This document shows, piece after piece, positions 3,301 through 34,100 of a stretch of 64,000 nt of DNA. The notes beneath the pieces were generated by a model. That model saw nothing but the letters and a program-made list of their open reading frames with translations. It did no database searches and was not told the DNA's origin. Numbering within the stretch: position 1 is the first letter of the stretch; the number at the start of each line of letters is the position of its first letter. This DNA is from Pocillopora damicornis (lineage: Eukaryota). The stretch covers positions 62,001-126,000 of the forward strand of contig NW_020847369.1 in assembly GCF_003704095.1 (NCBI RefSeq). The letters are read 5' to 3'. Position numbers and translations under genes: made by a program.

Positions 3301-6300
3301 TATTTTTGAAGAACCACCGTTAAGTCTTTTCTTATTACGTCCACAGCTCTCTTGACAAGTGGTGAAGTCTTCCAGTTCATTGCATTTTGCCAGCGGTATC
3401 CTTACGTTCTACTACACATATTCACATTCAGTCTGGCTAGTGCTATAGGACAGGTATGACCAGTTTTAAGAACGAGTATAATCCTTATTAGGTACTGTCT
3501 TTTTAGGGCTCTTTTCGATATTGTGTCGTAAAACTAAAACAAAAGCAATCGCAGCGGCCAATCAGAAAAAAGGAAAAGACCTTTCAGAGCCAATGAGAAC
3601 TCAAAATAAAAACTATCAAACTGCCTAAAGCGCGGGAAAAACGCGGGTGACCAAATCGCGATTGGTTTCAATTTTGAATCTGATTGGTTTAAAAAGTGGT
3701 GCGAATTTTTCTTGACCAATCACAAAGCGAATTGAAGCGATGCCAGAGCAATCCCGGGTTACTTTATACACTCAATTGAAATTTGCTCTAATACAAACGT
3801 ATTACAGATTCTCGGGCCGCTCAGTGTGCATATTCTCCATACTGTTCTCTATACATTTCCTAAGGTGCTGACAAAGAAAATTTGTTTAACGATCAAGAGC
3901 TTCTTTAGTTGGTGATCATTTCCTTTATTTTCATGGCCTCAATGTTTGATTCAGAGATGAGAAATTCGATACTAGTGGCTCTCAGGGGTCAAAGGTTTCA
4001 GAAAAGTGATTGGTTATGGGACTAAAATAAAAACGAAAATGAACAGCAGTAACAACAATTAAACAAGAGTGAGCTTGTATAGTGTAGGCTGCATCTGATT
4101 GGCTGTAAAGACCTGCCAAGTTCACACTGATTGGTGAGCAGTTATCAAATCAAGGTCACGATTTTCCAGGGGATGAGTGAATCCCCTAAGTCTTATGCCT
4201 TGCATGGAGATCGGTTCTTCCTTAGAATTAACCAAGGTTTTACTTTTTTGTGGACTTGGGGAGGTTTTCTTTCTTTTGCCCCGCAAGAGTTTCGTCACGG
4301 TCTTCCGGAATTCTCGAATCTTGAGCACGTAGATGATGAAATTGGCGAAAGAATTGCTATAGTGCAAAAACTTTGCGAAGTAAATCAACTGGAGAACATA
4401 ACAGTCTTTGCAGAACATGATGATAATGTTCATAATGTAGAAAGGGACCCACGTGAGGATGAACACAACTGTGATTAAGGACAGCGTTACCGCTAGCTTT
4501 TTTTCTTGTTTCGTGCCTGTCCTGTGGTTTTGGCTCACAGGCTTCCTAACCTTGTGCCAAATCATAGCGTAAGCGACAGAAATTAAAATCAATGAAGTGA
4601 ACACGCAGACAAGCACGGCGTAGTTGAAGACAGTTTTTAGCAGGTCTTTGCTGGTGAAATTGCTCAGAACGCGAATCCCAGCAACGCAAGCCGCTAAGAA
4701 CCAGACCAGGCCGATCTCCATCAAATAAGTCGCTTTGGTGATAGTTTTGTGCTTGTGAGGGCGGAACACAGAGTATGCGCGATCCAGCGCTATGGCGACG
4801 AGCGCAAAGATTGACGCGAAACCCATAAACGCGTCGATAGGCAGGTAAATCTCGTTAAACCGGATTCTGGCCTCGTTTTTACGTAGATAATAAAACAGCA
4901 TTTCAGTTACGTACATCGGTATTGAGCATGCGCCAACCATAAAATCCGCTATCCCCAGGCTCACTAAGAAGTAGTTGGTGCGGGCGTTGGCGAGCTTTTT
5001 GTTTGTGCTGAATGCTGCGATTGTCAGCGAGTTTCCGACGATGATGGCTATTGCTACAATAGCATACGATATCGCCCAGCCAAGTAGGCTTGGTATTGAA
5101 ATGTAACCTTGTAGTTCGCCTTGATTTGTTTCGTTGTTCGTTGTATCCGTGACGTTCACGGAAGGTTCATGGCAGTTCATGGCAGATTATTGTAGTCTAG
5201 AAACAGAAAGCAAATTGTGTTAATGGAGCCGACTCAGAGCGATTTATTTCGATGTTATCTTTGTTTCAAGTCACACTCGAGACTGACTAGAATAGCACTT
5301 GAAGCATATCCCAGACGGTTTCAACTCCCCCCTCCCCTGGGTAAGGTACTAGTCCCATCACAGGTCAACCCCCTCTTCTCCACAATTTCACCAGGTTTTC
5401 TTTCTCACCCCCCCCATCCGAAGTTTTCGGTACCCATTTTTACTCCTGGGTGAGGAAAGGCACTGTCAGGATATCATGTCTTGCCTGAGAACACAACAAA
5501 AGAAGGAATAATTCTAACGAAATTCAGCTGTGCAAACCTGAGCGAGCGAGCCTGAAGCGCGGGAAAACGCGAGTAAGTCGGGAGTGATTTTTTGGTAAAA
5601 ATTGTATTGGCTTAAAGATTGGCGCAAATTTTTAACCAATCACGGTGTACAGTGATGCAAAACCAATGAGATGTCAGATTAATTCCGATACTTAGCTAAA
5701 AATTGCTCTTAGGTGGGATTTCCTGCAATCATTTTGGACCACTTTGTGTACGTGACCGCACACCGCAAATTTATTTCTGACATCTGCGGGATTTTTCGTT
5801 CGTCTGGTTTAAGGTGGAAGTGTCAAATTGTCAGTGATAAAATTCACACTCGGTATGTTCAATAACAGTCTGTGGTAGTTATTAAATCGAAGGAACTTTG
5901 GCGGTTGTCGAAAAAATAATTGTAATGTGGGTAAGGTCAAGGAACGTGTAAACTTGTTGAAACAACAGCACTTGTAAACGATTGTCCTCGGAACTTTTTG
6001 GGAGTCTCCAGGTTTCTTACATTTTTCCCGAAATTGTAAAACTTTTATTTAAAAGTCATTTCTAAAAAGTAGGACAAAAATAATGAGGTTTGCAGGTTCT
6101 TTATTAATGTAGTTACTTTGAAGAAGGGTTTTAGAGCTTAGAAATTGAATTAGAAACTGCATACCATGTGTACATGGTGAACTTCGTTCTAAATTGGCGG
6201 ATTTACTTTTTGGGCTCTCATCCAGCAACTAAATATTTGTTTGCTCTTTTTTAACATATAAATTTTTTCCTTGATTCAAAATTTTTTTCCTAGTTTTTTC

Positions 6301-9300
6301 TTTCTATTTTTTGTGCGCACAAAGGAGGCAGCTAACGAGACAGTTCGCCTCTGTTTCAAACAGATTATAACTATAATATTTCTCGTCGTGACACTTTTGA
6401 AATTCTGCCTGATCTTTAGCCAAGCTCCACAGTTCAGTTCAATTACATGTTATTGACTTTTTCGTCAACTGAGAGCATTTCACGTCGTTTTCGTTTACCC
6501 GCGAAATGACATTCGACGAAAAGTCAAAACTGTAGAATAATGCAGCAAAATAAAAACAAAATAAAAGTGAGCATTTAGTGGTCATAAATTTCACTTCGAT
6601 ATGCAGTTAATTTCCTATTAAATAATTTTTCAATTTTGTCCTCTGTGCAAAGTTTACTTTTTTTTTAATGGCGTTTGCTTTTGTGGTGCGGAAATGACTT
6701 ATTTAACCATGCCTTGACATCTGCACTTTTTTACCATTTAGTCATTGAAAAGGCTTTTTTTTAGTCCTTAGTAATCGCTCTTCTAAGCTCAAATTCAGTC
6801 AAGAACTGTTGTTTTTTTTGGCGCATTACTGCTTTAACGCGTTATCTCTCTGATGCAAGTGCCTTTTAAGGCATTTTTTCTCAGCCGGTATTATTCTATT
6901 GTGATGATATTTTAGTAATATTTAAATTGCGTCTCGTTTTATAGCTCGAGGCGAGCAGTTTTGATTATCATTACGATATGACGAATTTTTATGTGAGATG
7001 AAAGACTTCCCGATACATGACGCTTTCTTTTATTTTCGTAACCTCAAGCAGAATATCGCGTAATTCACTGAATTTCAGTATCGTTCCTTCACTATTTCTG
7101 GTATCTGTACCTGTATATGACATTTCGCAATTAAAGTTTTACTTTCTTATTGTTTGTTTTGCGTAGTATGTAGCTTGGAAAACTTCAACAAGCGAGCGCA
7201 GTTTGATATTACTTCTCCACTGACTTTTGAAAACGTTGCCCAGAAATTGAATTTGAATTCGATTCGGAGGACTTTGCATGCTCTTGTGGGAAAAGTCGCC
7301 GAATGAAGTATGATATTCCTTCATAAAGTACGTAGCAATAGTTTTTTTCTTACCTGTCGACTTTAAAACGTGGTTTTTAGTTTTATTCCGCTTTTATCTG
7401 ATTAAAACCACGGCGTTTTCGAGCTTTTGAAGACTCACTGTCCCTTGCAAGTTGAGGACTCTGGTGGTGGTAGCTGTGTTGCAAATTTGTCTTCTTAATG
7501 TGTTACTGTCAGCGCCTTTTGTTATAACCAGCAACTGTTATTGCTTCCTGTGCAGCAACCAATCGAATTACGCAGGTGAGATAATTTTTCGCAAGCAGAT
7601 ACGACATCTAATTTGGCGCTAAATTGCGTTACGATTAGGAAGTCGATGAAACTCTCGATTGTATGTATGATTGTATAAAATCGTTTAGGTTCATTTTCCA
7701 CTAAATATTTCGAAATATATCGCGACGGGCTACCAACGTCATTAAGATAAAACACAGTTGGTTTAAATGCCGGAGGAAACCAAGTGGTCCTCAAGACTGT
7801 CATTAACCTTAATTCAGTTTTTTCTTGCAATAACAATATTGACGAATCCCTTTGTTCTTAAGTCACTCAAGTTTTCGGTCTGTGTTTGTGACAGAGGGGG
7901 ATACGTTCTGTATTTTATTAAAACTTTTAATTCGCCTATGTTGATTGTGAATTTAGAGGGTATTTGGTGAACTGTGTTTGATGCTTTTTGTGGGCTGTAA
8001 AAATTAGTCTATTTCCGATAATGTAGATAAGCCCTTTCGTATTCATTTGAATTAGTTGTGCGGAGAGTTTTACAGGAAGCCGCAAGAGAAAGGTGGGAAA
8101 TTGTGTCTGATTGTCAGAAAATAGCGTGAACTCGGTCTGATTGCGGAAAACAAAGGCAGGAATCATGTCTGATATTGAGGAAATAATTTGTAGGAGAGAA
8201 ATAGCGCGAATAAACTGGTATAGTTTCCCTGCATCGGGAAATTTGGCATGCTGCATTGAAAAAATGGCGGGAAACTAGGTGACCTCAGCTGAAAAATTGA
8301 TTCGCTTCGCGAGGATAATGGCGGGAAACTATAATTGTACGCGGTGGAAATAGCGGGAAATTTAGCGTGCTACGTTAATAAAAAGGCGATAAATTTAGTG
8401 GCTTTAGTTGAAAATAGGTTTGCATCCCAAGGATGATGGTGGGAAATTAGACTTGTAGCCGCTAGGAATAGCAGAAAATTAACGTTTAGTGCGGAAAGAA
8501 ATTTCTGAGGAATATTATGACGTAAATAAAGATTTGGCGGCACTTTGTGCTATATTTGATTAGGTGTCATACTTGAAATTTATGGTTAGAGTTAAATATA
8601 TTGTGTGAAAATCTGTCTGGAAAAGTTGTGATCTCGTCTAATTGCATCTCGGTCACCTCCTGATGGTAAGTAATGTCCAAGTTCTCTTGGCACATGTGAC
8701 TTACTGTCAAGCGCACTAGGAAAAAGAGTGACAAATTAATCAACAAAAACTGTTGGAAAGGAGTGTAAGGCGGCCGGTTTAAAAGAATTGATATTCTGAT
8801 CTTTTAGTTGACCCTATCTAATCAGCAAGCAGCGAAACTCTAGAACTATCGTTTACCAATCTAGTGTCCGGTCATCACACAATGCTATTTTCAAAATAGC
8901 TAAAAAAATTCGATGAAGAAAAGAGAGTTGGGGCTAAAGATGCCACATTCTAAATAGAATAATGTTTTGCAAGACTTAATAGTTATCCACACACGTTCAT
9001 ACATCAGTTAAGATTCATATGCACTTGCATGATATGGTGAGACGCATCTCTGTTTATTGGTAATTTACCTTTTTCCCTTGAAATCAAGATCTTTAGTTCC
9101 GTTAACGCTTCACTGTTCAGTTTTTATCTCGTGTTTCGATTTACGTGAGCTTTTATCAAACTTGAGTTTGCGTAAGAGCTACATATGGCGTTTTCTCTTT
9201 GTTTTATCACATGTTTCGGAAATTCTTTTCGTGATTCATGTTTTACCTAAATTTTTGATTTTTATCACAAAATATTATGCAAATGCCCGTACGTTCCAAC

Positions 9301-10583
9301 TAACTCGCGTGCGGTTCCACTTGAAAACCTTTGAAAATCGTGGGTTCTTTTTTACCAGAAGTTTACGGTTGTAAACAACGAGGTGTCCCTATAAAGCGTA
9401 TCTCGACCCGCAAGCCAATAGAAATCGTGACGGAATATGACGGAAAGGAAGGGCTGATCATAGCCTACTTCGGTAGGTACACCGAAAAACAGCTCATGAA
9501 TTCGTACTTAATATGAAACCTAAACAGAGCAGTTCGTTCTTGCAAAATTTTTGTGCAGGGATTTAAGAAAGTTTTTCCGACGCCAGTTTGTTTTCAGTTA
9601 GGGAATCAGAGAGTCCTGCAATACTTGACTTACCCTGGAGGTCGAATTTGTTTCATGATCGCCATTGTATTCCCAAAACGAACGCCCTTCAGTAGGGTAG
9701 TGCTGGTGTCTCGAAAGAAAATAACATATGAAGTGAATCATATTTTAAAGTGTGTTTCATAAGTTACCAATTTTTCTTGACCATCCTCAGTCGTTTCCAA
9801 AGTGTTTGCGTTGGTAAAGTAGGGGAGAAGGCGAGGAGACCTCTCTCACTTTCACGCTACCCATTACACTTCACGTTCCCATTCTACCTGCGTCGGTTGC
9901 CGCCGTTAGACTGGGAATGAGTCAGGAGTTTTTCTGTGCGGTAAACTTCAGTTAAGGAAATTTCGGAAAGGGCCTGGAAAAAAGAACTAAGGCATGGGCT
10001 TAAACCTCTCGCCTCTCATACACTACTTGGGTGCCACCACCAATGGAGCCACGAAGCCTCATCTTGTGAGCGAGGCAAATGGGTGCCGTGGTCTCCTCCT
10101 TAATCCTTTGACTCCCAGAAGTGATCAACATGTAACTTCTCTCTGTGATATCCGTACATTATCTAACAAACAGGTAATGAGAATACTCAAACTTATCAGG
10201 TAGAAGTTGCCATCTTGATCTAACACCAAATTCTCAAAACTAATTTACAAGGAAATGTTTAGCAGCTGGAGGGGAGAATTAACAGCTAGTTCCCAGGAGT
10301 TTAAGGGTTAACAAACGTAATCAATAATACTACATGGATTAAATAGTGTTAAATTTCTTTTCTGATTTTATTTCCATCACAGAATTTCATCTTCATGACT
10401 GTGGCTAACTTTGGCCCACTGACCTGCTCCATAATCACCACAACTCGTAAATTCTTTACAATCCTCGCCTCAGTGCTCTTGTTTGGAAATTCGCTTATCA
10501 CCCGCCAATGGCTTGGTGTGTTTTTGGTTTTCGCTGGACTCACACTGGACAGCATTTATGGAAAAGCAAGGAAAAAAGCGTAG
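307..10583 (+). CDS. SLC35B1: Solute carrier family 35 member B1 (UGTrel1/AXER, ER ATP/ADP exchanger), 5'-partial, 7 exons visible
   Basis: Phase-consistent GT-AG exons 307-440, 672-702, 1596-1699, 1886-1945, 2627-2753, 3347-3453, 10383-10583. They give ...[41 protein letters not shown]...[16 protein letters not shown]...[10 protein letters not shown]...[41 protein letters not shown]...GKARKKA*, which are SLC35B1 hallmark motifs. Last intron 3454-10382. Confidence 0.95.
900..1140 (+). mobile_element. Penelope-like element terminal fragment with a decayed minimal hammerhead motif
   Basis: tgaca-CTGATGA-t-gac..gtc-AAAA-t-gtc-agtca at 1033-1077 has the layout of a type I hammerhead. The assignment to a Penelope-like terminus is from recalled family patterns. 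Confidence 0.55.
1200..1450 (-). mobile_element. Degenerate tRNA-derived SINE
   Basis: ctcccaattggagtc...ggatgctctacca..gagct is the reverse complement of a decayed tRNA-like head. Confidence 0.4.
3507..3790. repeat. Dispersed CCAAT-rich repeat (family A), non-autonomous element
   Basis: Core aagcgcgggaaaacgc...gattggtt...tctgattgg...gaccaatca recurs at ~5540-5710, ~41790-42180, ~42920-43120 and ~43589-43857, with decayed remnants near 31400-31730. Confidence 0.8.
4122..5180 (-). CDS. Rhodopsin-class (class A) GPCR, monoamine-receptor-like; single coding exon nested in the last intron of SLC35B1
   Basis: 352-aa ORF with 7 hydrophobic segments: GN (TM1), LGIADF (TM2), ALDRAY (TM3), W4.50, FILTWVPF (TM6), [11 protein letters not shown] (TM7) and helix 8 EFRKTV. 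It also has N-terminal N-glycosylation sequons (NVT, NET), Asp3.32 and Tyr7.43. Confidence 0.92.
   Translation of the reverse strand: MNCHEPSVNVTDTTNNETNQGELQGYISIPSLLGWAISYAIVAIAIIVGNSLTIAAFSTNKKLANARTNYFLVSLGIADFMVGACSIPMYVTEMLFYYLRKNEARIRFNEIYLPIDAFMGFASIFALVAIALDRAYSVFRPHKHKTITKATYLMEIGLVWFLAACVAGIRVLSNFTSKDLLKTVFNYAVLVCVFTSLILISVAYAMIWHKVRKPVSQNHRTGTKQEKKLAVTLSLITVVFILTWVPFYIMNIIIMFCKDCYVLQLIYFAKFLHYSNSFANFIIYVLKIREFRKTVTKLLRGKRKKTSPSPQKSKTLVNSKEEPISMQGIRLRGFTHPLENRDLDLITAHQSV
5335..5497 (-). mobile_element. tRNA-derived SINE body fragment
   Basis: ggtacccatttttactcctgggtgaggaaaggcactgt...tgtcttgcc is the reverse complement of the SINE core at 54635-54690 (aagacactta...caggagtataaatg). 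Confidence 0.55.
7354..7560 (-). promoter_or_regulatory. Putative non-coding first exon / promoter region of the nested GPCR
   Basis: A minus-strand acceptor (ctttctgtttctAG, intron end at 5197) lies 16 nt upstream of the GPCR ATG, and a strong minus-strand donor CAG|GTAAG is at 7354/7353. The implied 5'UTR intron is 5197-7353. The 5' end of this exon is a guess. Confidence 0.4.
8000..8500. repeat. Degenerate tandem repeat (~120-bp period) rich in (G/T)GCGGGAAA
   Basis: Units beginning cgggaaattt at ~8235 and ~8354 align along their length. ggcgggaaa/ggtgggaaa motifs recur at ~8092, 8266, 8320, 8353 and 8437. Confidence 0.65.
10100..10311. mobile_element. piggyBac-like MITE (TTAA-flanked)
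   Basis: TTAA-tccttt...aaggg-TTAA ends. A close copy in the opposite orientation lies at 33412-33623. Confidence 0.8.
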
Positions 10584-11043
10584 AAGAGATAATTGTCCGA
10601 AAATTAGGTAGCACAAGTAATTTTTTGGTCGAAATCAAAACAGCAGAGAATAGTTGAGCCAGCGGTTTCCGTTGTTAAGCATGATGAAGGGTGACTTGAT
10701 GGTCACTTTAGCTCGCTCCTTTCCCTGACTGATCGGTTAGAAACTTACTTGTTCACTCCTGTTGTCATTTTAACAAAGAAACAAATATATTTATTAGTTT
10801 CTGTATTTATGTGAATAGCAAATCTGTAGAGATTGTCATTGTAAACAGCTCAAGTACCATGTGAAAGCTGAAAAACGAAAACCATAGCGTGAAGAATGCT
10901 AAAAACGTTTTGGTTTCTCTTGTGATTGAGTTAAAAGAATAGTCTAAAGCGGTCAGTATCAGAAAACCGAAACAGCTTGCGTGAATCAGGGAGAAATGGA
11001 TTAAAATATGCGCTTTCCGTCTTAACATAGGGGGCGGAATTTT

Positions 11044-11080
11044 GGGGGGGGGGGTGGGGGATGGGGGATGGGGGATGGGG
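11044..11080 (+). repeat. G-tract / (GGGGGAT)n, G-quadruplex-forming motif
   Basis: G11-T-G5-AT-G5-AT-G5-AT-G4, downstream of the SLC35B1 stop codon. Confidence 0.8.
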
Positions 11081-12534
11081 CGCTGTAGATCCTCAAACGA
11101 AAATTTGGGGGAGGTAGAGCCTCCCCCGTACGTTTCGGTGTGGAGACTATCGCTGGAGTAGCATAACTGTTTTGGCAAAATATTCAGTCCTGTTATCCCT
11201 TCACTAATCATCTCTTCAGGATTGCACCTGACGGAAAAAAAACCCTCATTGCGGTATTTTTTTTAGCGAATAACTGCCTTCTTATGCATTGACAAACATG
11301 GATCACCTTTGCTCGTAAGGACAACCACGCATAGGCCACTATATTTTTCAGGAACTTTGAGTCAAGGTACTCATTTGACTTGATGCACGTTGACCATCGG
11401 CTACCCTATGTTGTTTATCGCTTGCTTCCCGTATGGAAGCACGAAAAGTATTTCTTATTAGTCTCACTGACTTTGGCGTACGAATTAAAATACTTAACAC
11501 AGAATTCGATGCATCGTTTATTAGGCGTTGTTCACAGTTAGGAGTCAATAGTCAGTTTCACCTTGATCATTACGACGAAAAAAATGGACCCTGAGTGTAC
11601 TTATTCTACAATTCTTTGTCGACCCTGTAAAAAAATTGCGGAGAAAACCTTTATCCACTGTAAATGCAAAATTACTTTCACTTTGGTGTAAAAACAACTT
11701 GAAGCGAATAGCAAAAAGGTTACCAGCTATGTCTGGTTGCTGTTTGCCGGTGAATAGCATGGTTCATCTCCTTCATGAAGTAGAATATTGATTGAAGAGT
11801 TATGAAAAAGATTTGTTGAATACGGATCGTTAAGAAAGCTCGCGATTTTTCTGACGAGGTGTTGAGTCTCGGGGAAACTGTCGCTGCAGGAAACTTTGAG
11901 AATTATTTGATGAGTTATCGTTGAGGATCGCTTTTAAAACAGTACCTTTCACAAATTAGATAAAACGGAAAGAAAGCAAAATACTAACTATATGGTGATG
12001 TACCATGCTCGAGCGCCTTACTCCAAGAGCTTCCCGCGGCGCGCTAACATCAATTTTTTTTTACTGATTTCAGTTTTTCAAACGCGCGACGGACTTCTCA
12101 GAAAAAGAAGGATTGCTCGTAGTCTAGAAAGACTTTTGTTCGTTTGAGGTTTATGATTCATGACTTTCGCTATCGTTTCTACAGAGGGGGGGAGAGAGGA
12201 CAGTTTCTCAAACTTGAAGACCACAGATCCTATAATTTGACGAGAGAAAGATGTCATAAAAAATTAAATTTAGACTAAATCTATTTCTTTCGTGTCCTGT
12301 TTTAATACGATTATAGATGCGGTTAACAATGATCGTTTATGAATACCATTTTCTGTTGGTCAATTTGAAAATTAATCTACTAAACCAAAAGGAAACTTCT
12401 CTCTCCGGAAAGGAAGCGCTAATCTATATATCATCTACACGGCCAGTTAAGGGCGAGTGCTCATTTGTCGGTAGTCTAGGAACTGATCTATTCCTTGAGC
12501 CCGCGTACCAATTGGTCTGAATACTTCTTTCAAG

Positions 12535-15500: not shown

Positions 15501-18500
15501 AGCAAAGCTTCCTCTAAACACCACACTTGTAAGTCTCAGCACCAGCAATAAAAGTGACTCACTCTGCTCAAAGTGCAGTGCCAGAATCACAGCAGTTCAT
15601 GTGGCTCTCAGAACCCATCTTTGTCATTTGTAGACAAGACTGTTTTATTCATCACAAGTTGTCAGTTGTGGTTGTTTCATGATTACTCACTCATCAGGGG
15701 ATTTTATTGTAATAAAATAAAACAATAAAATCCTCTGATTATTGAGTAATCATAAAACAGGCTTGTAGAGATGAGAGTATAGTCTCTGTTTTTATCCCCT
15801 ATCTCAATATATATTGCACTCTACATCTCCATATCAAGCACTGTATTATGGAAAAATCGAAAGACAGACTATGTATACATTTCAAAAATTGTTGCAAATT
15901 TGAAAATGTATATAAATACATAAATGTTTTATTTTATCCTGAAAAAGAAAACAAAAAGATATATATATATATATTTAATATGCTGGTTGCCTGGATTTTT
16001 CACCACTCACCATGGTGACAAAAACAGTTGCAGTGCTAAACATTTAATATGTTTTGTACAGAGTTAACCATTTTGCCTAGATTGTGCTTATCTGAACTTT
16101 CAGCACACAAACTGTCATTTTCCATCCACAATATTTGCTGCCATCAGAATTTTCATTTCCATATTGTAATGTACTTATTGTCTTCTTTTTTTAGGAACAT
16201 CCAGACTATAGTGAGGACAGATGCCTTGCCTTTGTGTGTGATATCACGGACAGTTCATTTGTTTTTCCATTTCCCAACGAAAGCCTTGACATCATAATTC
16301 TCATTTTCGTATTGTCAGCAGTACACCCAGACAAGTAAGTTGAAATTTTATAACATTTCATAGATCTTGCCTTTTATCCGGTAAAACCAAGTTGAAGTCA
16401 CTGATGATCCTTGCAATCTGATTGGCTCTCAGCAGTGCAATGTATCCACGAAGTACATTCTTTCCCTAAAATGAATCTTTTCCCCAGCCATTAAAACAAG
16501 TTAACATGGATTGATATTTTTTTAATAATTAAAATTGCCACTTGTGGAAAGACTAAGGGTATTTCCCACAAAAAGTTTTTTGATTCCCTCCCTGGTAGTT
16601 GTATTACGAGTGGGTGTTACTTAATACTCATTTAGACTTCCTTCCTTCTCTTTCCTTCTCTGTTTGCAGAATGCCAGCCGTTATTTGCAGATTATCCAAG
16701 GTTGGTACTATTTTGGTAAAAGTCTAGAGTCTTTAATATAGTGACGAAGAACACATGTACAGCTGTAGGTATTTGTAGAAAGAAATGACACCTCAACCAG
16801 ATGCAATCCTCGACTAACATCTTTGATTTTTCCTTTCCAGCTTCTCAAACCAGGTGGACTGATTCTCTTTCGAGACTACGGTCGATATGATATGGCTCAG
16901 CTCAGGTTTAAGAAAGGTGGGAAGTGACGCCGTGTTTGGTTCATGACTTTAACATAGTTCTGCAAATATTGCAGATACTTTTTAGAGATGAAATTTTTGT
17001 CAAGAGTCTCTGCCAGTCGCCCGAAAATCTCTGTCTGTCCTAATTGTCAGAATTACTATAGCTGGGCTGTTGGGCATTGTGAGCGAGCGAGTAAATTTGT
17101 GCAGTCTTCAGAGTGAAAGACGAGGAAGGAAAGTTCTTTCTCTCCTCCCACTAGTTCCCCCTTGATATTTTTTCGCTCGTCCCGACAGACTGACTGCTCG
17201 TAACAGGCTCTCTAGTCTCTTAACATGTCTTTTACAACTTTACCTTTGACCTGTGTATGACTTGTACGTAACTGTATGTGGCTCAAGTAACTCACAGTGT
17301 CACTGTAGCTCAGATGACAAACTGTTCTTCCAGGAATAGCGGCTGGTCTGAGGTTCGAGTTCTTTCGTAAAGAATTTTTGACACGATACTTGCTCTACCC
17401 TTTCATTGATTCTTAACTTAAGATTTCACCGATCCTCGACAAGCATTTTGGCTCGTTGTCCTTTAAAATCCAGCCACTCCTGCGAGACGGAACTATGAAC
17501 GGCTCCGTTATTTTCTGTGCGAAGACTTTCGGGCCCTCGATCACTAGACTGCATTTATGATGCTTCACAAGGGGAAAGAGGGAGAGAGAGAGGGAGGAAG
17601 AGAAAGAGATCTGAGAATAAGCCAAATTTCTCCTGTGGGGGGGTTGGAGTGGAATCATTTATTTATGTACAGCTTGATGTAAATAGATGTGCACAATTTG
17701 ATCCACTAAATGGTTGACTTGTGATGTCTCAAATAATCTTTCGATTTTAGAGGATTATTTTTGACCTAAATGTACGTCTGAGTGACCTCGATATATTTAG
17801 AAGGATTGTTTTATAGAAATGCGCCTTAACATGGACTTTGATCGAGTTTATTTTTTCTGTCACGTCTGGACAAGTTCTCTCTACCAAGTTAAGAGTACGT
17901 TTTCTTTTGATTTTTTTGTTTCCCTAGGTAAATGTTTGTCCGATAATTTTTATGTTCGCGGTGATGGTACAAGGGTGTACTTCTTCACACAAGGTAAGAA
18001 ATTTCAATGTAGTAGCTCATTCAATTTGTGGTTGCCGTTAGATTTGCTTTCGTCCCGTGACGCTGACGTTTATAATTAACAGCGTTAAAAATAGAAATGT
18101 TAATAAGTAAATTAGTTAAAACGTGCGCATTTACAGACGCACACACTTGAGGTTTTACGAGAGATATTCGCCTGGCAGTCTTACGTGTTGTGAGCCTCAT
18201 AATCGACGTACTTGAGTCCACAAAGGAGTTTAATGAGAATCGGTGCGAAGGTGAGAAGCGCTGGGAAAACCTTACAAATTTCTACTGGTGTCTGCCACTT
18301 GTTTCACTAGCATATTAGGGAAACTTGTTTAGAATAAAATGCTTACCGAAGCGCAAACGAGAAAAGCAGGCTCGCTGTTGACAGTACTCAGGCTACAGAA
18401 TTTGAACTGCAGCATCAAGGGAATTTTTTACGAAGTTTAGCCATCATGCCGGAATTATGCTCAATGCTCTGATAATAGCATTATGCGCAAAATTATACCG

Positions 18501-27500: not shown

Positions 27501-28387
27501 ATTTGTTTCCGCAAAATATAAAAACTATTACAAAATTTTCATGCTACTCGGGGTGATTGAATTCCGTGTAACCTTGAAGTAGAGTGTGTTTGTCCAACCT
27601 CTCAGTTCTTTGGACTAAAAGGTGCTTGCTACGTGTAAAAACATTTGCAGTTCACTGAAACTTCCTGAAGTGGGATTAAAACCTAACTCTGAGTTTCATC
27701 AACAAAAAACAGTCGAGCAGACTTGTAGATTGTGGGTGGCCGCTATGTCGCACTAATCAGAAGAGAGTTGAAGACATAACTGTAATAACTGTTCTCTAGT
27801 GTGGTCGATACAAACGGACTAAAACTCAGAAGGTACCAAATTTGGACACAAGCTGGATTATTTTTAGTGAGTTTCCCTGTTATAATTCAGTTGACAATAG
27901 CCGAATGCGATGACACAGTCTGGGCGGAATATACAAAGTGTAGTTTGCGGAATTTTACAACAGCGTTCAAGGACTCAATTTTTCAGAGAAACTCAAAACC
28001 GTGAAAGTAGAAGAAAGAGTATAAAAGTGTACCCCAAAACCAGAGACGCATTTTGGAGGGAACTCGATCCAATACAGAGAAGCAACTTTACAAAATAGAA
28101 CAAATAAAGAGCACGGCCAACAGTTTTAAAACGCAGATTTAAGGGTCTGTTATCTAAATGCAACACTTACTAGAAAAATCAACTTTGATCTCATTGTCAT
28201 CGTAACCAAACACTGGGAAACTATGAATAGTATTTTGAAGATTTTAGTTTTCCGCTTAATTTGAATTCGCTCGGTATATAATTTTGACAAAGGGCTAACG
28301 CACGAAACGTTAGTTTTGAAATTGTTTATGGTGGCTAATTTACATCGTCAACTCAGTTGATAGAACCAAATTATCTTGTTACAATTC

Positions 28388-28428
<41 letters not shown>

Positions 28429-30445
28429 TTTACATAATTTTGGTTATTTGTACCTCGTAGGAATTTACTTTGATTTTTGAATGCGCTACCCTAGTCATTA
28501 CGCTGATCATTTCCTCGTGTTGAGATGAATTCATTTCAATTCAGGCGACGCAAGATTTCAAAAACTTGTACTGTAATAAGAAACCCTTTCACTTTCGGGA
28601 GTGACTAACGCTCCTCACCGTATTAATCATTTTACAGTGACCAAAGTAACTTCGACTTCAGCCTTAAGATTGAGTGATAGTCAAAGCAATTTTTTTTAAG
28701 TTGAAAGATGAACAATATCATTTACATGATCCAAAATGATACAAGAAATCAATTATGTTGCATAAGTCTGGGGAAATTAAATTCCGGAAACCATTAATTC
28801 AGTAATCAATCGTTAGTATTTAGAGAATGTTGATACATTTACAGGTCTAATTAGATAAAAAGAATCAAAATTGAAAAGCGATATTTTTGTATCAATTCCT
28901 TTGTCCACTCATGCAGTTTCTCGCGTGCGTAAATGATTTTTGTTGGATGTTTGAAACAGTTCGAATATGCAGCCTTCCTTCCTTGTGTGAATTTGTTAAG
29001 GGTGAACTGAAATACAGTTTAAAAAGTGTAACTTGAAAATGTTCATGGGGCGGCGGAAAAATGGAGGAAAAGGGGGAAGGGGCTGTAACCTTGCCGGCCT
29101 TGCTGAGTGAAGAATCGGTTCTACATGATATCCAACTTTGTGGTCTTTCCACAAATCATCTCTTCAGAATCACGCTTCGCGAGATAATGTGTTGTGTTTT
29201 GAACAACTGCCTGGTTATACACTGTTACAATTTAACCACGACTACAACAGGTAGTTTTTTCGCATTTCAAAGAGGTTTGCCAGCTTATGCCAACGCCATT
29301 TTAGGAAATTTGGTTTGGTTAGCAATAAGCTCTCATCTTTTAAACTTTCCGCTGCTCAAGCAATGCTTAGGCTGTTCGAGCAATGTTGAACATAGAAAAT
29401 TGGGGGAGGGGGGAATGGAGGAGCCAACATCGCTGTCCCTCCCCCCTCCCTGCACCTCTGCCACGCCGCCTAGGCAATCTACATTTTTAAAAATTTTAGA
29501 TTTACATCCATTTTAAACAACTACGGCCGAAGTCAATTCCATTTGGCTAATTGACCTTGAGTGACAGTGCCTAAAGAATTTAAATTCTACAAAGGGAGAT
29601 CGAACATATTTCTTTGTCTCGGTCCGTGCGACTGTCTGCTTCTTTAAAAAGCTTAACTAAAATTAGCTGACCTCGTCCGATATTATCGCAATAGTTCAGA
29701 CTACTTAGCTCGTAGTTCTAACAAAAATTAATGATAATCATTCAGTTGTACGGAAAATGAAAGATGTTTGTAAACGATTAAGGTTTCTATTGCACGCGAA
29801 AAGAAATTTTGCTCGTACTTTCTTAGCCAACCTACGAGCAATTTGCAGAGCATAGAACACTTGTCTAGTTGCCTGCGTGAAGTGTGAGGAGTGTCTGTCT
29901 TGTTTGAATATTTAATTTCGACGTCTAGGAACTGTGTAAATTCAATTTGCAACGTCCAGAAAATTGGGAAGGACAAAATCTGTCCGTACTTTGCCGTATT
30001 CTAGCTGTGTGCAGCGCCAGTAAAAATAATATTTTATGCTAAAATATGACTTCCTTCTCTCTGATAATTTTATGGTTACTACAGAATGATTTTGTTTGGT
30101 TCCTGTCTTGGTTGAGTAAAATCCTCTGTCTACATTTCCTTTTTGTCACAGAAATGAAAATAATGGTTTTGTAAAAGTAAACTAAGAAGTTTTAAATTTT
30201 ATACACAAAAATTAATTCATTCTATTTTAATTTGTTTCCAGACCCCTCGCTTTACTTTTTGTCACCTGATATTAGTTATTCTAACTCCTCCTTTTAATAT
30301 TTCAGACGAACTTTCCCAAATGTTCCAAGAAGCCGGCCTTGTTGAAGAACAGAACTACGTTGACCGCCGACTTCAAGTGAATCGCGGCCGGCAGCTGAAA
30401 ATGTATCGTATTTGGATTCAGTGCAAGTATAGGAAACCTAGATAA
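12535..30445 (+). CDS. METTL2: tRNA N3-methylcytidine methyltransferase METTL2 (Trm140 family), 11 exons, 348 aa
   Basis: Exons 12535-12620, 12793-12884, 13480-13540, 14417-14660, 14783-14832, 15372-15432, 16195-16334, 16670-16700, 16841-16916, 17928-17993, 30306-30445 total 1047 nt with all phases matching. Motifs: [39 protein letters not shown] motif [69 protein letters not shown]. Confidence 0.95.
12977..13188. mobile_element. piggyBac-like MITE (TTAA-flanked), second subfamily
   Basis: TTAA-ccctttacaccctaacatcagtatgca...agag-TTAA. Related copies at ~3823-3997, 13820-14021, 30886-31090 (inverted), 34795-34998 and 35289-35471. Confidence 0.8.
13820..14229. mobile_element. Two adjacent piggyBac-like MITEs sharing one TTAA
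   Basis: The left element ends agagTTAA (14018-14021) and the right element starts at the same TTAA (ccctttcactctcaagatct...aaggaTTAA 14226-14229). The right element has a relative at ~41361-41560. Confidence 0.75.
15080..15214. mobile_element. Palindromic MITE-like element
   Basis: ~33-bp inverted arms: aacaattggttcatacgtcagcgtgcattcatc / gatgaatgcacagctgacatatgaaccaattgtt. Confidence 0.7.
20227..20457. repeat. Local tandem duplication, 125-bp period, ~105-bp matching units
   Basis: cactcagtgaat.tctttcttgagtgac.tgcaagcc.attaatgaa.gcaaagtttgaaatatttatctt.tgagat.agaaagatt... starts at 20227 and again at 20352. Confidence 0.9.
22664..23705 (-). CDS. snail: Snail-family C2H2 zinc-finger transcriptional repressor, 2 exons, 251 aa, nested in the last intron of METTL2
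   Basis: Exon 1 (23705-23621) encodes the SNAG domain [14 protein letters not shown] intron spans 23620-23335, and exon 2 (23334-22664) is in phase. Five fingers include [59 protein letters not shown] and a terminal C2HC finger ([16 protein letters not shown]). Candidate polyA signal at 22166-22171 (minus). Confidence 0.96.
23820..24240 (-). promoter_or_regulatory. Snail proximal promoter with motif cluster
   Basis: CCAAT (minus, 23843-23847), perfect CRE TGACGTCA 23859-23866, E-boxes CAGGTG 23872-23877 and 24151-24156, TCF-type CTTTGAA 23885-23891, SOX-type CATTGTT 24172-24178 and 24183-24189. These are motif matches only. Confidence 0.55.
27790..28220 (+). mobile_element. Degraded LINE (CR1/L2-type) fragment
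   Basis: From 28139 the frame reads LRVCYLNA...[11 protein letters not shown], resembling the start of an APE endonuclease domain with a deletion. No intact ORF. Confidence 0.35.
28285..28432 (+). mobile_element. Penelope-associated short repeat with a decayed hammerhead core
   Basis: tgacaaagggctaacgcacGAAACgttag...ggtggctaatttaca..caactcagttga...cccaccgacgcagcaccacagtttctttagaaactta. Related copies at ~34175-34285 and, inverted, at ~14925-15020. Confidence 0.6.
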
Positions 30446-31155
30446 CGAAAAACTGTCTGGAAAAAAAAGAGGGAATTCTCGAATTCCATGTAAATGTTGT
30501 GGAAACTTGTAGATTTCTCAAGACTATCGGAGAAATCTGCTCAACTTTAAGGAAACCAGCTACTCACCAAAGATAAATCTTGCAAGTGTAGCATTTCGCT
30601 ACATAATATTTATTTATTTACACCAAATTTCCATTTGCTTGAACCCCTTACCAATGGAATGAGATACGAGGTTACTTAATCAAACATAAAAAAATGAAGA
30701 AAAAGAAAAGAAACAAAACCCACGTGCGTTAAAAAAGAAATAAAAGTGAAACTCCATGAAAGCATTTTTAACTTGGGTACAAGATAATCAAAATTTCCCA
30801 AATTCCTTGGTAACAGCAGGGATGGGACATCCTCAGCATTTTTAAGAATTATTAAGTGCTTAGTTTCCCGTGAATACACATTTACTATCCCTTTGATCCT
30901 GAAAAGTGACTGACTTCTACATTTACCTTACATTACATTCCTTGAATCAAATGTAACAGTCATAAGAATAACGGAAATGATCACCAATTTAAAAAGCTCC
31001 TGTTTGTCAAACAAATTCTCTCTGTATTACCATAGAAAATGTAAAGAGAAAAGTGTGGAAATACGAATAATGAAATTAGGGTGTAAAAGATGAAGTCCTA
31101 GCCATCTCTGTTCTGCTGGAGTTCCACAACAAAAGACAGACTTCTCAATTGGTCT

Positions 31156-34100
31156 TTACTTGTCACTGAATTTCGTATGCTTTGGTAGTTTTGTCTTTAC
31201 TTCTGAAGCCTTTGAGGAAAACAAAAACAAAAAAAAACAACATTATTTACCCTAGTACTTCGAATCGCAATGTCTTTAATATTGGCATGAGTAACAGGTT
31301 TGGCGAGAGAATTGCACAGCTGTGAAAGCACTTCATTGCAACTGCTCTGAGATTGTTCAACTCCTATTGCTTGGAAGGTATTTGTCTACCAGTCTTCTCT
31401 GCATGAGTATCTTAAAATCAAAGCCAACGAAATCACATCCCCAATAAGCAACCAGAACAAAGATAAATATTTTGAAAACCTGTGCTGAAATTATCATCAG
31501 AATCAGGGTTCTGAGGTTCATGTTTAAAAGTTAGAGTTCTGCTAAGGTTGTTGAAACATCAGGCAAAAGCGCCATAAACAAGAAATTCAGAAATTCTCTC
31601 ACAGCCCCCTAGACAATCAGTCTAAATGATTTCTCCTGGGTTCAAACTGTAAAGTCTGGACTGTCTTTTGTTTTGTATCTAATTGGTTGGCAAGGAAGCA
31701 AAAGTTTTCTACAACTGTTCAAAACTGATTGGTATAGTTGAACCTCGATTATCCGGACCTTGATTATGCGGATTTCTCAATTATCCGAACTTTTTCTCTG
31801 ATCCCAGTTTTGTCCTGAATATTTATTAGTCATGATCAAGACCCGTAGCCATATTCTTTAAAACTAGAGCGTTGAAAAGTGAAGAAAGTTGGGTTTGTTT
31901 TGCTTTCAAAAAGCAAAAGCAGTGCCTTGTAATGCGTTGTAACTAACGAAGAACATTAGAATGAGGTCTGATTGGCTTAGAGTTGCTTTGTTGCTGTGTG
32001 AGGTTTCACACTCTACACAGCATCACAAATGGTTATTCAAGATCATTATGTCCTTGATTTGTAAATGTTTTGTTACGCTTAAATGTTATTTTTTAATTTT
32101 AATCAGTTTTTGTTCCTCATTAATATTCATATTCTTAATTATCCAGACACTCGATTATCCGAACTATTTCATCTAGTCCCAACAAGTCCGAATAATCAAG
32201 GTTTGACTGTATCAATTCAGTTTTTGGACCCCCCCCCTCCACTGATTAGATTTTTGCCATGCCACAAATGGGAAGTTTGAGGATTGAATGTAATTATTTC
32301 ACTGTTAGTTTTTTCCTTTTAATCCGTTATTGCTAATAAACTGTTTAATTTCAATGCCAACCACAATGGAAGGTGAAATCAATCAATACCATCTTGTTAA
32401 CACTAGCAGCACTTTTGACATGTGATTAATTATTTCTCTAGTTAATAATTAAACTTGCATACTTACATATCCAGGAAAGTCATAGTCAATACCAAGATCC
32501 TTGATCTTCTTTCTCTTTCTTTTTTCTTTTTTTAAAATGTTTTCCACTTGCTTTTCATGTTCCTTTTTACTTTTTTCCTGTAAATGCAAATCAAAAAGAC
32601 ATCTTACATAAGACCATCACCTATTTGGTAGAGAAAATAAGTATATTGATGAAATTTTAGTACCTTGTCAAACAATACCAGCTAATAAAATTTGTAAGGA
32701 TCTTCAATTCCTACACACTACTTCAAGTACTTGATACATATTATGAAAAATTTTAGGGTAAAACATTATTAGTTCCTCATCAAGCACCACCACCTGATTG
32801 ATTAGAAAGGATCTTCAATTCCCACACACTACCACAAGTGCTTGATACACAGTACAAAAAGTGCGCTGTGGGCCAGTTACACACATAACTGCATAAATCA
32901 AGGATTTTAGATTCAGGCCAGCTGAAATACTTCAGAAAAAAAAAATTTCTTATAACCATTATTCCAAGGAGCAAACAGGTATTTTCAATACATGCATGTG
33001 TTCATCATGAGTCATTTACAACTGCAGCTTCTCTAGAAGAAAATAATTGTTCTGTTTGCTTCTTCACTTAAGCTACTGCACACCTTATTGTGCTTTGTTA
33101 TTTCTTCTTGCTGCCGCGGTATAGAATAAAACTTCCTCTCTGATCCTTTCCACAGCCTTGGATGAACCTTTTCCTTTGAAACTACTTTGCCTGTAAACAC
33201 AAAAGCAAGCAAAGGGAAAAGGTTGATCTTTTGTTTTGGGTATCAGGAAAAGGAAAGTCTAACCTCCAATTAAGATTTGGATGCTGTTCAGTTGCTCTTG
33301 GAAAGTTGAATAATCTACCAACTGAGATACAATGAACTCCTCTGCAGGGATTTGAAAATGTTTTGAAGTAGGCATCAGACTCTACCATAGTATGTGACTG
33401 TGAAAAGTTAATTAACCCTTTAACTCCCAAGATCTGATTGTTAATTCTCCCCTTTAGCTGCTACATAGTTCCTTGTAAATTAGTTATGAGAATTTGGTGT
33501 TAGATCAAGAAAAAAACTTCTACCTGACACATTTGAGTGTTCTCATTACTTGTTTGCTGGATACTGCATGGATATTGTAGGGAGAAGTTACTTGTTGATC
33601 ACTTCTGGGAGTTAGGGGGTTAAGGGCCTTTAGGTAACTATTTTAATCAGAGTAACTAGCAACATGTTATCAAGTAGCAGTTGGAACTCTGGCGGCTGCC
33701 GGCTTGGACCCCCCCCTTTTTTTCAAGCAAGTATGCAATATTCAGGGGGTGAAAACTGGTGAGTACCCTCTGTTTGTTGCAGTGCAACACCCTCCCCCCT
33801 CCCCCATCCCTTTTGAAAAATTTGGCTAAGCCCCTGCTGGACCTCTTGGTCATGGAGTCCTGCGCACTGACCATTGGGCCAATGTGTGTAACATGTCCTG
33901 CCAGTTGCTGCTGACAAATAATAGTAAGCTCATGTGTAATAACTTCTCACTACCTTTTCCTTGCAAACTGTACGCTACTCAAGAAATACTTAGTTGTATC
34001 AACAGATACCTGAAAATAACTACGGTAAATAAACTTGACAATCAAATTATAAAACAATTATTAAATGCAGTCATCACAAAACACCATATCAGTGTGGTGC

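Follow-up and report, generated by a model that had tools for sequence, protein, structure and literature searches.

The last intron of the METTL2 gene of the coral Pocillopora damicornis was found to contain a complete Snail gene. Both genes lie in a stretch of 64,000 nucleotides of contig NW_020847369.1, analyzed as a whole and hereafter called the window, whose own numbering is used below. METTL2 is encoded on the forward strand, while Snail, a gene of two exons encoding 251 amino acids, lies on the reverse strand wholly within the METTL2 intron. Snail has a central part in controlling gastrulation and epithelial-mesenchymal transitions. We regard the nesting as real with hardly any reservation. 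The nest is old, and on the simplest reading of the comparison with other cnidarians it would predate the split between stony corals and sea anemones. The conserved feature is the residence of Snail in the intron and not the antisense overlap, since Snail is on the sense strand of METTL2 in both anemones analyzed. The explanation that we consider somewhat probable is that of an autonomous Snail guest in a bystander METTL2 host, an ancient pair that was kept because un-nesting is hard.

METTL2 has 11 coding exons and a coding sequence of 1047 nucleotides, corresponding to 348 amino acids and a stop codon. The full-length gene was checked by aligning the public protein P0285, methyltransferase-like protein 2 of P. 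damicornis, exon by exon as a spliced model, and all 11 exons were found to be identical to it. Relatives carry the name tRNA N(3)-methylcytidine methyltransferase METTL2, and the S-adenosylmethionine (SAM) binding motif VGCGVGN can be read in exon 5. The 45-amino-acid translation of 30308-30442 matched 316 proteins among 1.84 billion at E ≤ 0.001. These were named METTL2 in molluscs, insects, lampreys, sharks, and others, and wherever the matched proteins are full length the query aligned at their C-terminal end. Single short METTL2 exons gave no Pfam match, nor did a search of PDB sequences with the last exon yield anything of use, the queries being too short in both cases. The full-length collinear similarity, the SAM motif and the C-terminal exon argue for a host gene of the METTL2/6/8 type of tRNA 3-methylcytidine (m3C) methyltransferases, i.e., METTL2; m3C32 methylation of tRNA may be predicted from the family names alone.

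An earlier note on this stretch had METTL2 breaking at YFFTQ|D (17993) and its conserved last exon beginning at 30306, and both the sequence and the RNA agree with this. Exon 10 ends in YFFTQ at 17993, and the codon split by the intron (G|AC, encoding D) gives the reading YFFTQ|DELSQMF. The remaining introns are 172, 595, 876, 122, 539, 762, 335, 140, and 1011 nucleotides long, i.e., 122-1011 nucleotides against 12,312 for the last one, in keeping with the earlier estimate of about 1 kb or less. In Logan contig L012 (1772 nucleotides, from a public run) exon 10 passes through ...CACACAAG|ACGAAC..., so that 17993 is joined straight to 30306. The alignment of this contig runs on to 31101, and the 3' untranslated region (UTR) of METTL2 therefore reaches at least that far.

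Read contigs of four RNA runs from three studies were placed on 17,750-23,749. All RNA runs are unstranded contigs from bulk libraries, in which strand, true transcript ends and expression levels are not readable. In all four runs the loose ends at 17993 matched the start of the exon at 30306, and the preceding junction, 16916|17928, was supported by loose ends in runs X1, X5, and X6. The junction by which the earlier note proposed to judge the gene model was thus recovered both in L012 and in every run. The sole internal joint within 17,750-23,749 was the 286-nucleotide intron of Snail itself. No alternative METTL2 terminal exon was seen in this region in the four runs. Low-depth RNA contigs tiled most of 17.96-21.6 kb, which fits what is expected for METTL2 pre-mRNA. 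In two runs exon 10 was extended to a second donor, which was joined to the same acceptor. Because the extension contains an in-frame TAA at 18077-18079, this isoform would lack the conserved METTL2 C-terminus, and it is a predicted target of nonsense-mediated decay.

The earlier note had named a misassembly of the 18-30 kb segment as the other way in which the nest could be false. No run of N was found within 17994-30305, RNA and DNA runs tile the region, and the DNA runs hold 95-99% of the words of the intron. Misassembly is very unlikely because the intron is free of gaps and tiled by these runs, and because the same layout was found in three independent coral assemblies.

The description of the guest as a complete two-exon Snail gene with a SNAG domain on the opposite strand agrees with the sequence, with Pfam and with the RNA-supported intron. 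Exon 2 matched Pfam zf-C2H2 with E = 9.6e-26, as well as zf-C2H2_4, in five stretches. Its top named relatives are Snail, SNAI1, and SNAI2 proteins. In a maximum-likelihood tree the Snail of the window was placed in the cnidarian Snail group (100/99) and, within it, in the clade of nested Snails (97/94). The SNAG-type motif, the C2H2 array and the tree placement point to a transcription factor of the Snail family. The SNAG motif (23677-23705) is a variant (R3K, S4A) of the consensus MPRSFLVKK. An identical start was found in Acropora digitifera (L013:19850-19928), whereas the anemone orthologues begin with MPRSFLVK. The two changed residues, at positions 3 and 4, belong to the conserved core of the motif, so that co-repressor binding may differ.

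The Snail transcript covers about 21.5-24.15 kb and thus lies inside 17994-30305. High-depth contigs were unbroken from 23336 down to 21602 in run X2 and 21522 in run X6. There was no clear copy of AATAAA near the 3' end, and the ends of RNA contigs do not prove a poly(A) site. A 535-nucleotide contig of run X2 starts at 23619 and would reach about 24,150 if collinear. TATA-like and initiator (Inr)-like motifs can be read near 24,170-24,135, where Snail transcription may start. The intron flanks measure 6.6 kb on the 5' side of Snail and 4.67 kb on its 3' side, close to the ~6.6 and ~4.7 kb given previously.

The comparison with other cnidarians, by which the earlier note would have dated the nest, revealed it in three corals and two anemones. 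Snail is antisense to METTL2 in P. damicornis (last intron 12.3 kb), A. digitifera (L013, ~10.2 kb), and the hexacoral L001 (~15.3 kb), whereas it is in sense orientation in Nematostella (L003 and L004, two assemblies, ~6.2 kb) and Actinostola (L016, ~11.9 kb). The last METTL2 intron was found to be free of Snail in the octocoral Paramuricea (L014, ~1.0 kb), the scyphozoan Rhopilema (L015, ~4.3 kb), and the hemichordate Ptychodera (L017, ~0.75 kb). These three share the intron position, YFFTQ|(D/E)EL. Snail was absent from the whole 25-37 kb retrieved around METTL2 in each of them, the outgroup sample being one octocoral, one scyphozoan, and one bilaterian, with an octocoral contig that ends about 4 kb past METTL2. 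We therefore regard the restriction of the nest to hexacorals as provisional.

Public gene models agree with this layout. The NCBI METTL2 model of A. digitifera (10001-23930) encloses a zinc-finger gene on the other strand (18886-19928), and tblastn gave the order penultimate METTL2 exon, Snail, last METTL2 exon. The NCBI METTL2 model of Nematostella likewise spans Snail. The deposited METTL2 protein of Actinostola, P0289, is a chimera in which residues ~245-332 come from exon 2 of Snail (L016:16182-16439); the METTL2 model absorbed this part of Snail because guest and host are on one strand there.

The coral and anemone nested Snails are orthologues and represent a non-A ("SnailB-type") paralogue, since they form the single clade mentioned above, separate from a clade of Nematostella SnailA and Exaiptasia Snail (99/97). 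The Snail protein P0014 belongs to a sister group of the nested Snails. On the contigs that carry it, no METTL2 exon was found over 4 kb to one side of Snail and 10 kb to the opposite side, a result that bears neither for nor against a nest. The Snail intron after the SNAG exon was kept in corals and anemones, and Snail therefore did not arrive as a retrocopy.

We compared the introns of the three corals collinearly by a sensitive method; the species are distant, and sensitivity is limited accordingly. Alignable non-coding DNA did not extend beyond roughly 21.1-25.0 kb, a span of about 4 kb that includes Snail. The window and A. digitifera share an unbroken alignment over 22622-24240, and the alignment to L001 is in pieces. 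A conserved non-coding element, 21106-21212, sits about 0.3-0.4 kb beyond the mapped 3' end of the gene. Its invariant blocks include CTGCCAAT and AATGTATT.AACATTTAAC. This element may act as an enhancer; an Rfam scan of 17,000-31,500 returned no family, so it is no known RNA. The intron comparison gave no alignable non-coding DNA with the anemones. Nor were conserved non-coding blocks found in the rest of the intron or in those parts of the other METTL2 introns that were compared, within the sensitivity given by the distance between species. The interspersed repeat at 28285-28433, which resembles a miniature inverted-repeat transposable element, has matches in several parts of L001 and L013. 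The distribution of conserved sequence supports a compact Snail unit of ~4 kb, which we favor over a regulatory landscape filling 12 kb. The earlier proposal of a Snail landscape that fills the intron was thus not borne out.

A second Snail paralogue of P. damicornis (C469:638070-638634, forward strand) was found antisense within an intron of ~8.3 kb of a STRIP/FAM40-like gene. The flanking exons of this gene (C469:640849-640769 and 632447-632385, reverse strand) are DUF3402 exons. In Exaiptasia (L002:5616-16009) the homologous STRIP intron holds a SnailA-like gene on the sense strand. With one assembly compared per lineage, the contrast of antisense in the coral and sense in the anemone is the same at the STRIP-like gene as at METTL2. 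PF11882 of the STRIP-like gene was found in the P. damicornis genome and PF07923 (N1221) was not, which reflects the sensitivity limit of an exon-wise search. A weak tblastx match suggested an additional STRIP exon separating Snail from the exons on either side of the intron. It was discarded as spurious, since the match is lysine-rich and the two flanking exons are contiguous in the protein, going by the human STRIP1 sequence.

We infer that a Snail segment, complete with its intron and its own promoter, entered a pre-existing phase-1 last intron of METTL2. The insertion would have taken place before the stony coral/sea anemone split and been followed by an inversion of the Snail segment within the intron in one lineage. 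Snail would be an autonomous transcription unit, with promoter, 5' UTR, the 286-nucleotide intron, a 3' UTR no shorter than 1 kb and one or more conserved elements close by, all in ~4 kb. METTL2 would be a bystander whose 12.3 kb intron is read through by the polymerase, after which the spliceosome joins 17993 to 30306. To free Snail, two breaks in one intron would have to spare both the proximal regulatory DNA of Snail and the essential last exon of METTL2, whereas inversions inside the intron would be harmless and would have occurred. The pair would thus have been retained because un-nesting needs two harmless breaks in one intron. That the nesting is conserved in corals and sea anemones fits a pair that is hard to separate. 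Several observations weigh against this account. The segments 18.0-21.1 kb and 25.0-30.3 kb show no alignable conservation; they may consist of neutral sequence or contain non-aligning enhancers. Exclusion or coupling of the two genes at the level of the cell is invisible in unstranded bulk contigs. The outgroup loci sampled are few (one from each of three groups), and Snail may have been lost there. The second Snail paralogue repeats the orientation pattern in an unrelated host, which hints at more than passive trapping.

This last observation leads to an alternative in which both Snail paralogues of hexacorals would have resided in introns of unrelated housekeeping genes since before the anemone/stony coral split, the SnailB-type in METTL2 and the SnailA-type in a STRIP-like gene, and both would have been flipped between the two lineages, selection acting on intronic residence itself. 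We consider this unlikely at present. Were it true, constitutive transcription of the host could give a gastrulation regulator an open or insulated chromatin domain, and the strand relation would not be under selection.

A genomic regulatory block consists of a developmental regulator and a housekeeping bystander gene that carries its enhancers. In its strict form the whole METTL2 intron would be the enhancer landscape of Snail, and selection on the enhancers would keep Snail in METTL2. The resemblance is that a developmental transcription factor has remained beside a housekeeping gene, in this case within it, for a very long evolutionary time; the pairing was kept across the anemone/coral split, with deep synteny of target and bystander in three stony-coral-type assemblies and two anemones. 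In addition, the intron measures 6-15 kb in the species that have Snail in it and 0.75-4.3 kb in those that do not, and both the promoter block and the ~100-nucleotide element are conserved among corals. However, the defining arrays of conserved non-coding DNA across the bystander were not found in the comparison of these distant species: conservation is limited to the ~4 kb around Snail, beyond which there is no alignment even between corals, nothing non-coding aligns to anemones, and part of the remaining intron is an interspersed repeat. We regard a strict regulatory block as possible but rather doubtful. The earlier note spoke of an extreme, fully nested genomic regulatory block. The full nesting stands; the enhancer array does not, and "extreme" is not appropriate since nesting is common in animals generally, as in a survey of mouse and human host genes (Montibus et al., 2024, PMC11694760).

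The same note held that every METTL2 transcript is antisense to Snail and that the genes might be coupled. If this were the reason for the arrangement, METTL2 read-through would repress or tune Snail, or the reverse. Snail is indeed antisense to its host in the three coral assemblies, a full-length METTL2 pre-mRNA is necessarily complementary to Snail mRNA, and intronic RNA contigs are present at low depth. Transcriptional interplay of host and nested genes is also documented in mammals (PMC11694760). Yet the orthologous Snail lies on the host sense strand in both anemones, and spliced METTL2 and abundant Snail mRNA contigs occur in the same bulk libraries, so neither a conserved overlap nor reciprocal expression was found in the assemblies and libraries analyzed. 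The mammalian survey likewise reports no strong orientation bias (PMC11694760). The antisense relation therefore holds for the corals and not as a conserved reason for the nest, and we give functional coupling little credence. The opposite orientations could in principle mean two separate insertions of Snail, in corals and in anemones. Such convergence, or an artefact in the form of misassembly or of a last exon belonging to another transcript, is highly improbable: the exact exon-exon junction was found in RNA of three studies, the intron is gap-free, Snail is in the same intron in five independent assemblies, and the nested Snails form one orthology group.

Table 1. Position and support of the features of METTL2, Snail and the shared intron in the window (nt, nucleotides).
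Feature	Position	Strand	Details and evidence
METTL2 coding exons 1-5	12535-12620, 12793-12884, 13480-13540, 14417-14660, 14783-14832	+	GT..AG, phases consistent
METTL2 coding exons 6-10	15372-15432, 16195-16334, 16670-16700, 16841-16916, 17928-17993	+	GT..AG, phases consistent
Alternative extension of METTL2 exon 10	17994-18250	+	ends at 18250 before a second donor (AAG|GTGAGA); spliced to acceptor 30306 in runs X1 and X2
METTL2 last intron, host of Snail	17994-30305	+	12,312 nt, phase 1, donor GTAAGA at 17994, acceptor TTTCAG ending 30305
METTL2 last coding exon	30306-30445	+	DELSQMF...CKYRKPR, stop at 30443-30445; protein matches, RNA
Snail 5' UTR and core promoter block	23706-24240	-	conserved among corals
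Snail coding exon 1, SNAG-type N-terminus	23621-23705	-	28 amino acids and 1 nt, read from sequence
Snail intron	23335-23620	-	286 nt, GT..AG; joint skipping 286 nt in 4 of 4 RNA runs
Snail coding exon 2, C2H2 array and stop	22664-23334	-	Pfam, relatives, tree
Snail 3' UTR	21522-22663	-	at least ~1.06-1.14 kb, high-depth RNA contigs
Weak conserved block near Snail 3' end	21,514-21,604		coral comparison
Conserved non-coding element	21106-21212		~100 nt, 77-81% identity in 3 of 3 coral pairs, collinear with Snail
Weak candidate upstream block	24935-24982		77% over 48 nt, E = 1.9e-5, collinear, window and A. digitifera only
Interspersed repeat	28285-28433		~150 nt, at least 40 genome copies, 80-88% identity, some adjacent inverted pairs

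The surroundings of METTL2 were also compared. In the window an SLC35B-type transporter gene (SLC35B1, 3454-10583) adjoins METTL2 and carries a G protein-coupled receptor gene nested antisense in an intron. The NCBI annotation of A. digitifera (L013:1-9439) has the same layout, with a 7tm_1 gene (6245-7255) inside a TPT/UAA gene. Downstream, the window and A. digitifera share the order of an RRM gene, an Ldh-family dehydrogenase gene (Pfam Ldh_1) and a K2P channel gene. In Actinostola, too, METTL2 has an SLC35B-like (UAA) neighbour (L016:26774-29535), which there lies downstream of it in opposite orientation. The linkage of SLC35B and METTL2 may thus predate the anemone/coral split, with rearrangement. 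Other METTL2 introns hold guests as well: a short-chain dehydrogenase gene in sense orientation in Nematostella (L003:1614-2369), and transposase-like genes (THAP/DDE_Tnp_4, YqaJ) in Rhopilema (L015:12243-16427).

METTL2 and Snail form a host/nested pair in the usual sense, as a single host intron contains the whole guest and is removed by splicing of the host transcript. We know of no Snail-family or METTL2 case in the mammalian host/nested catalogue, as far as its accessible part goes. More than one in ten genes of mouse and human contain another gene (PMC11694760). There, as here, the guest lies in a long host intron and both genes are transcribed, and the diversity of host transcripts has a METTL2 counterpart in the alternative donor at 18250; the difference is that the catalogue covers mouse and human and deals with expression interplay (PMC11694760). 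Anciently conserved pairs are known from jawed vertebrates, where LRRTM genes lie within introns of the alpha-catenin (CTNNA) genes (PMC3933685). They resemble METTL2/Snail in having a complete protein-coding guest that occupies a single large, conserved intron of a host unrelated to it, an early translocation in the clade, retention for hundreds of millions of years and nested paralogues. The LRRTM/CTNNA pairs differ in that paralogous guests lie in paralogous hosts through genome duplication, on opposite strands, whereas the two Snail paralogues lie in unrelated hosts (METTL2 and STRIP-like) and their orientation varies by lineage.

In the literature searched no paper was found that deals with a genomic association of Snail and METTL2 (synteny, nesting or intron), and the genomic context is not treated in papers on NvSnailA/B. 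The earlier statement that the arrangement had not been described holds to this extent; however, the NCBI models of A. digitifera and Nematostella already span Snail, and the public protein P0285 equals the 11-exon model. Altogether, METTL2/Snail is an old, well-supported and fairly ordinary conserved host/nested pair and not a new type of system.

The nest alone reveals no new molecular mechanism. It accounts for annotation errors, such as the Actinostola METTL2 model that swallowed part of Snail, and it serves as a warning that METTL2 pre-mRNA contributes to unstranded reads across the Snail gene of corals. Nematostella is a genetically tractable model. The opposite strand relations of the same two genes on either side of the anemone-coral split provide a natural experiment, in which residence in a transcribed intron can be set apart from an antisense position.

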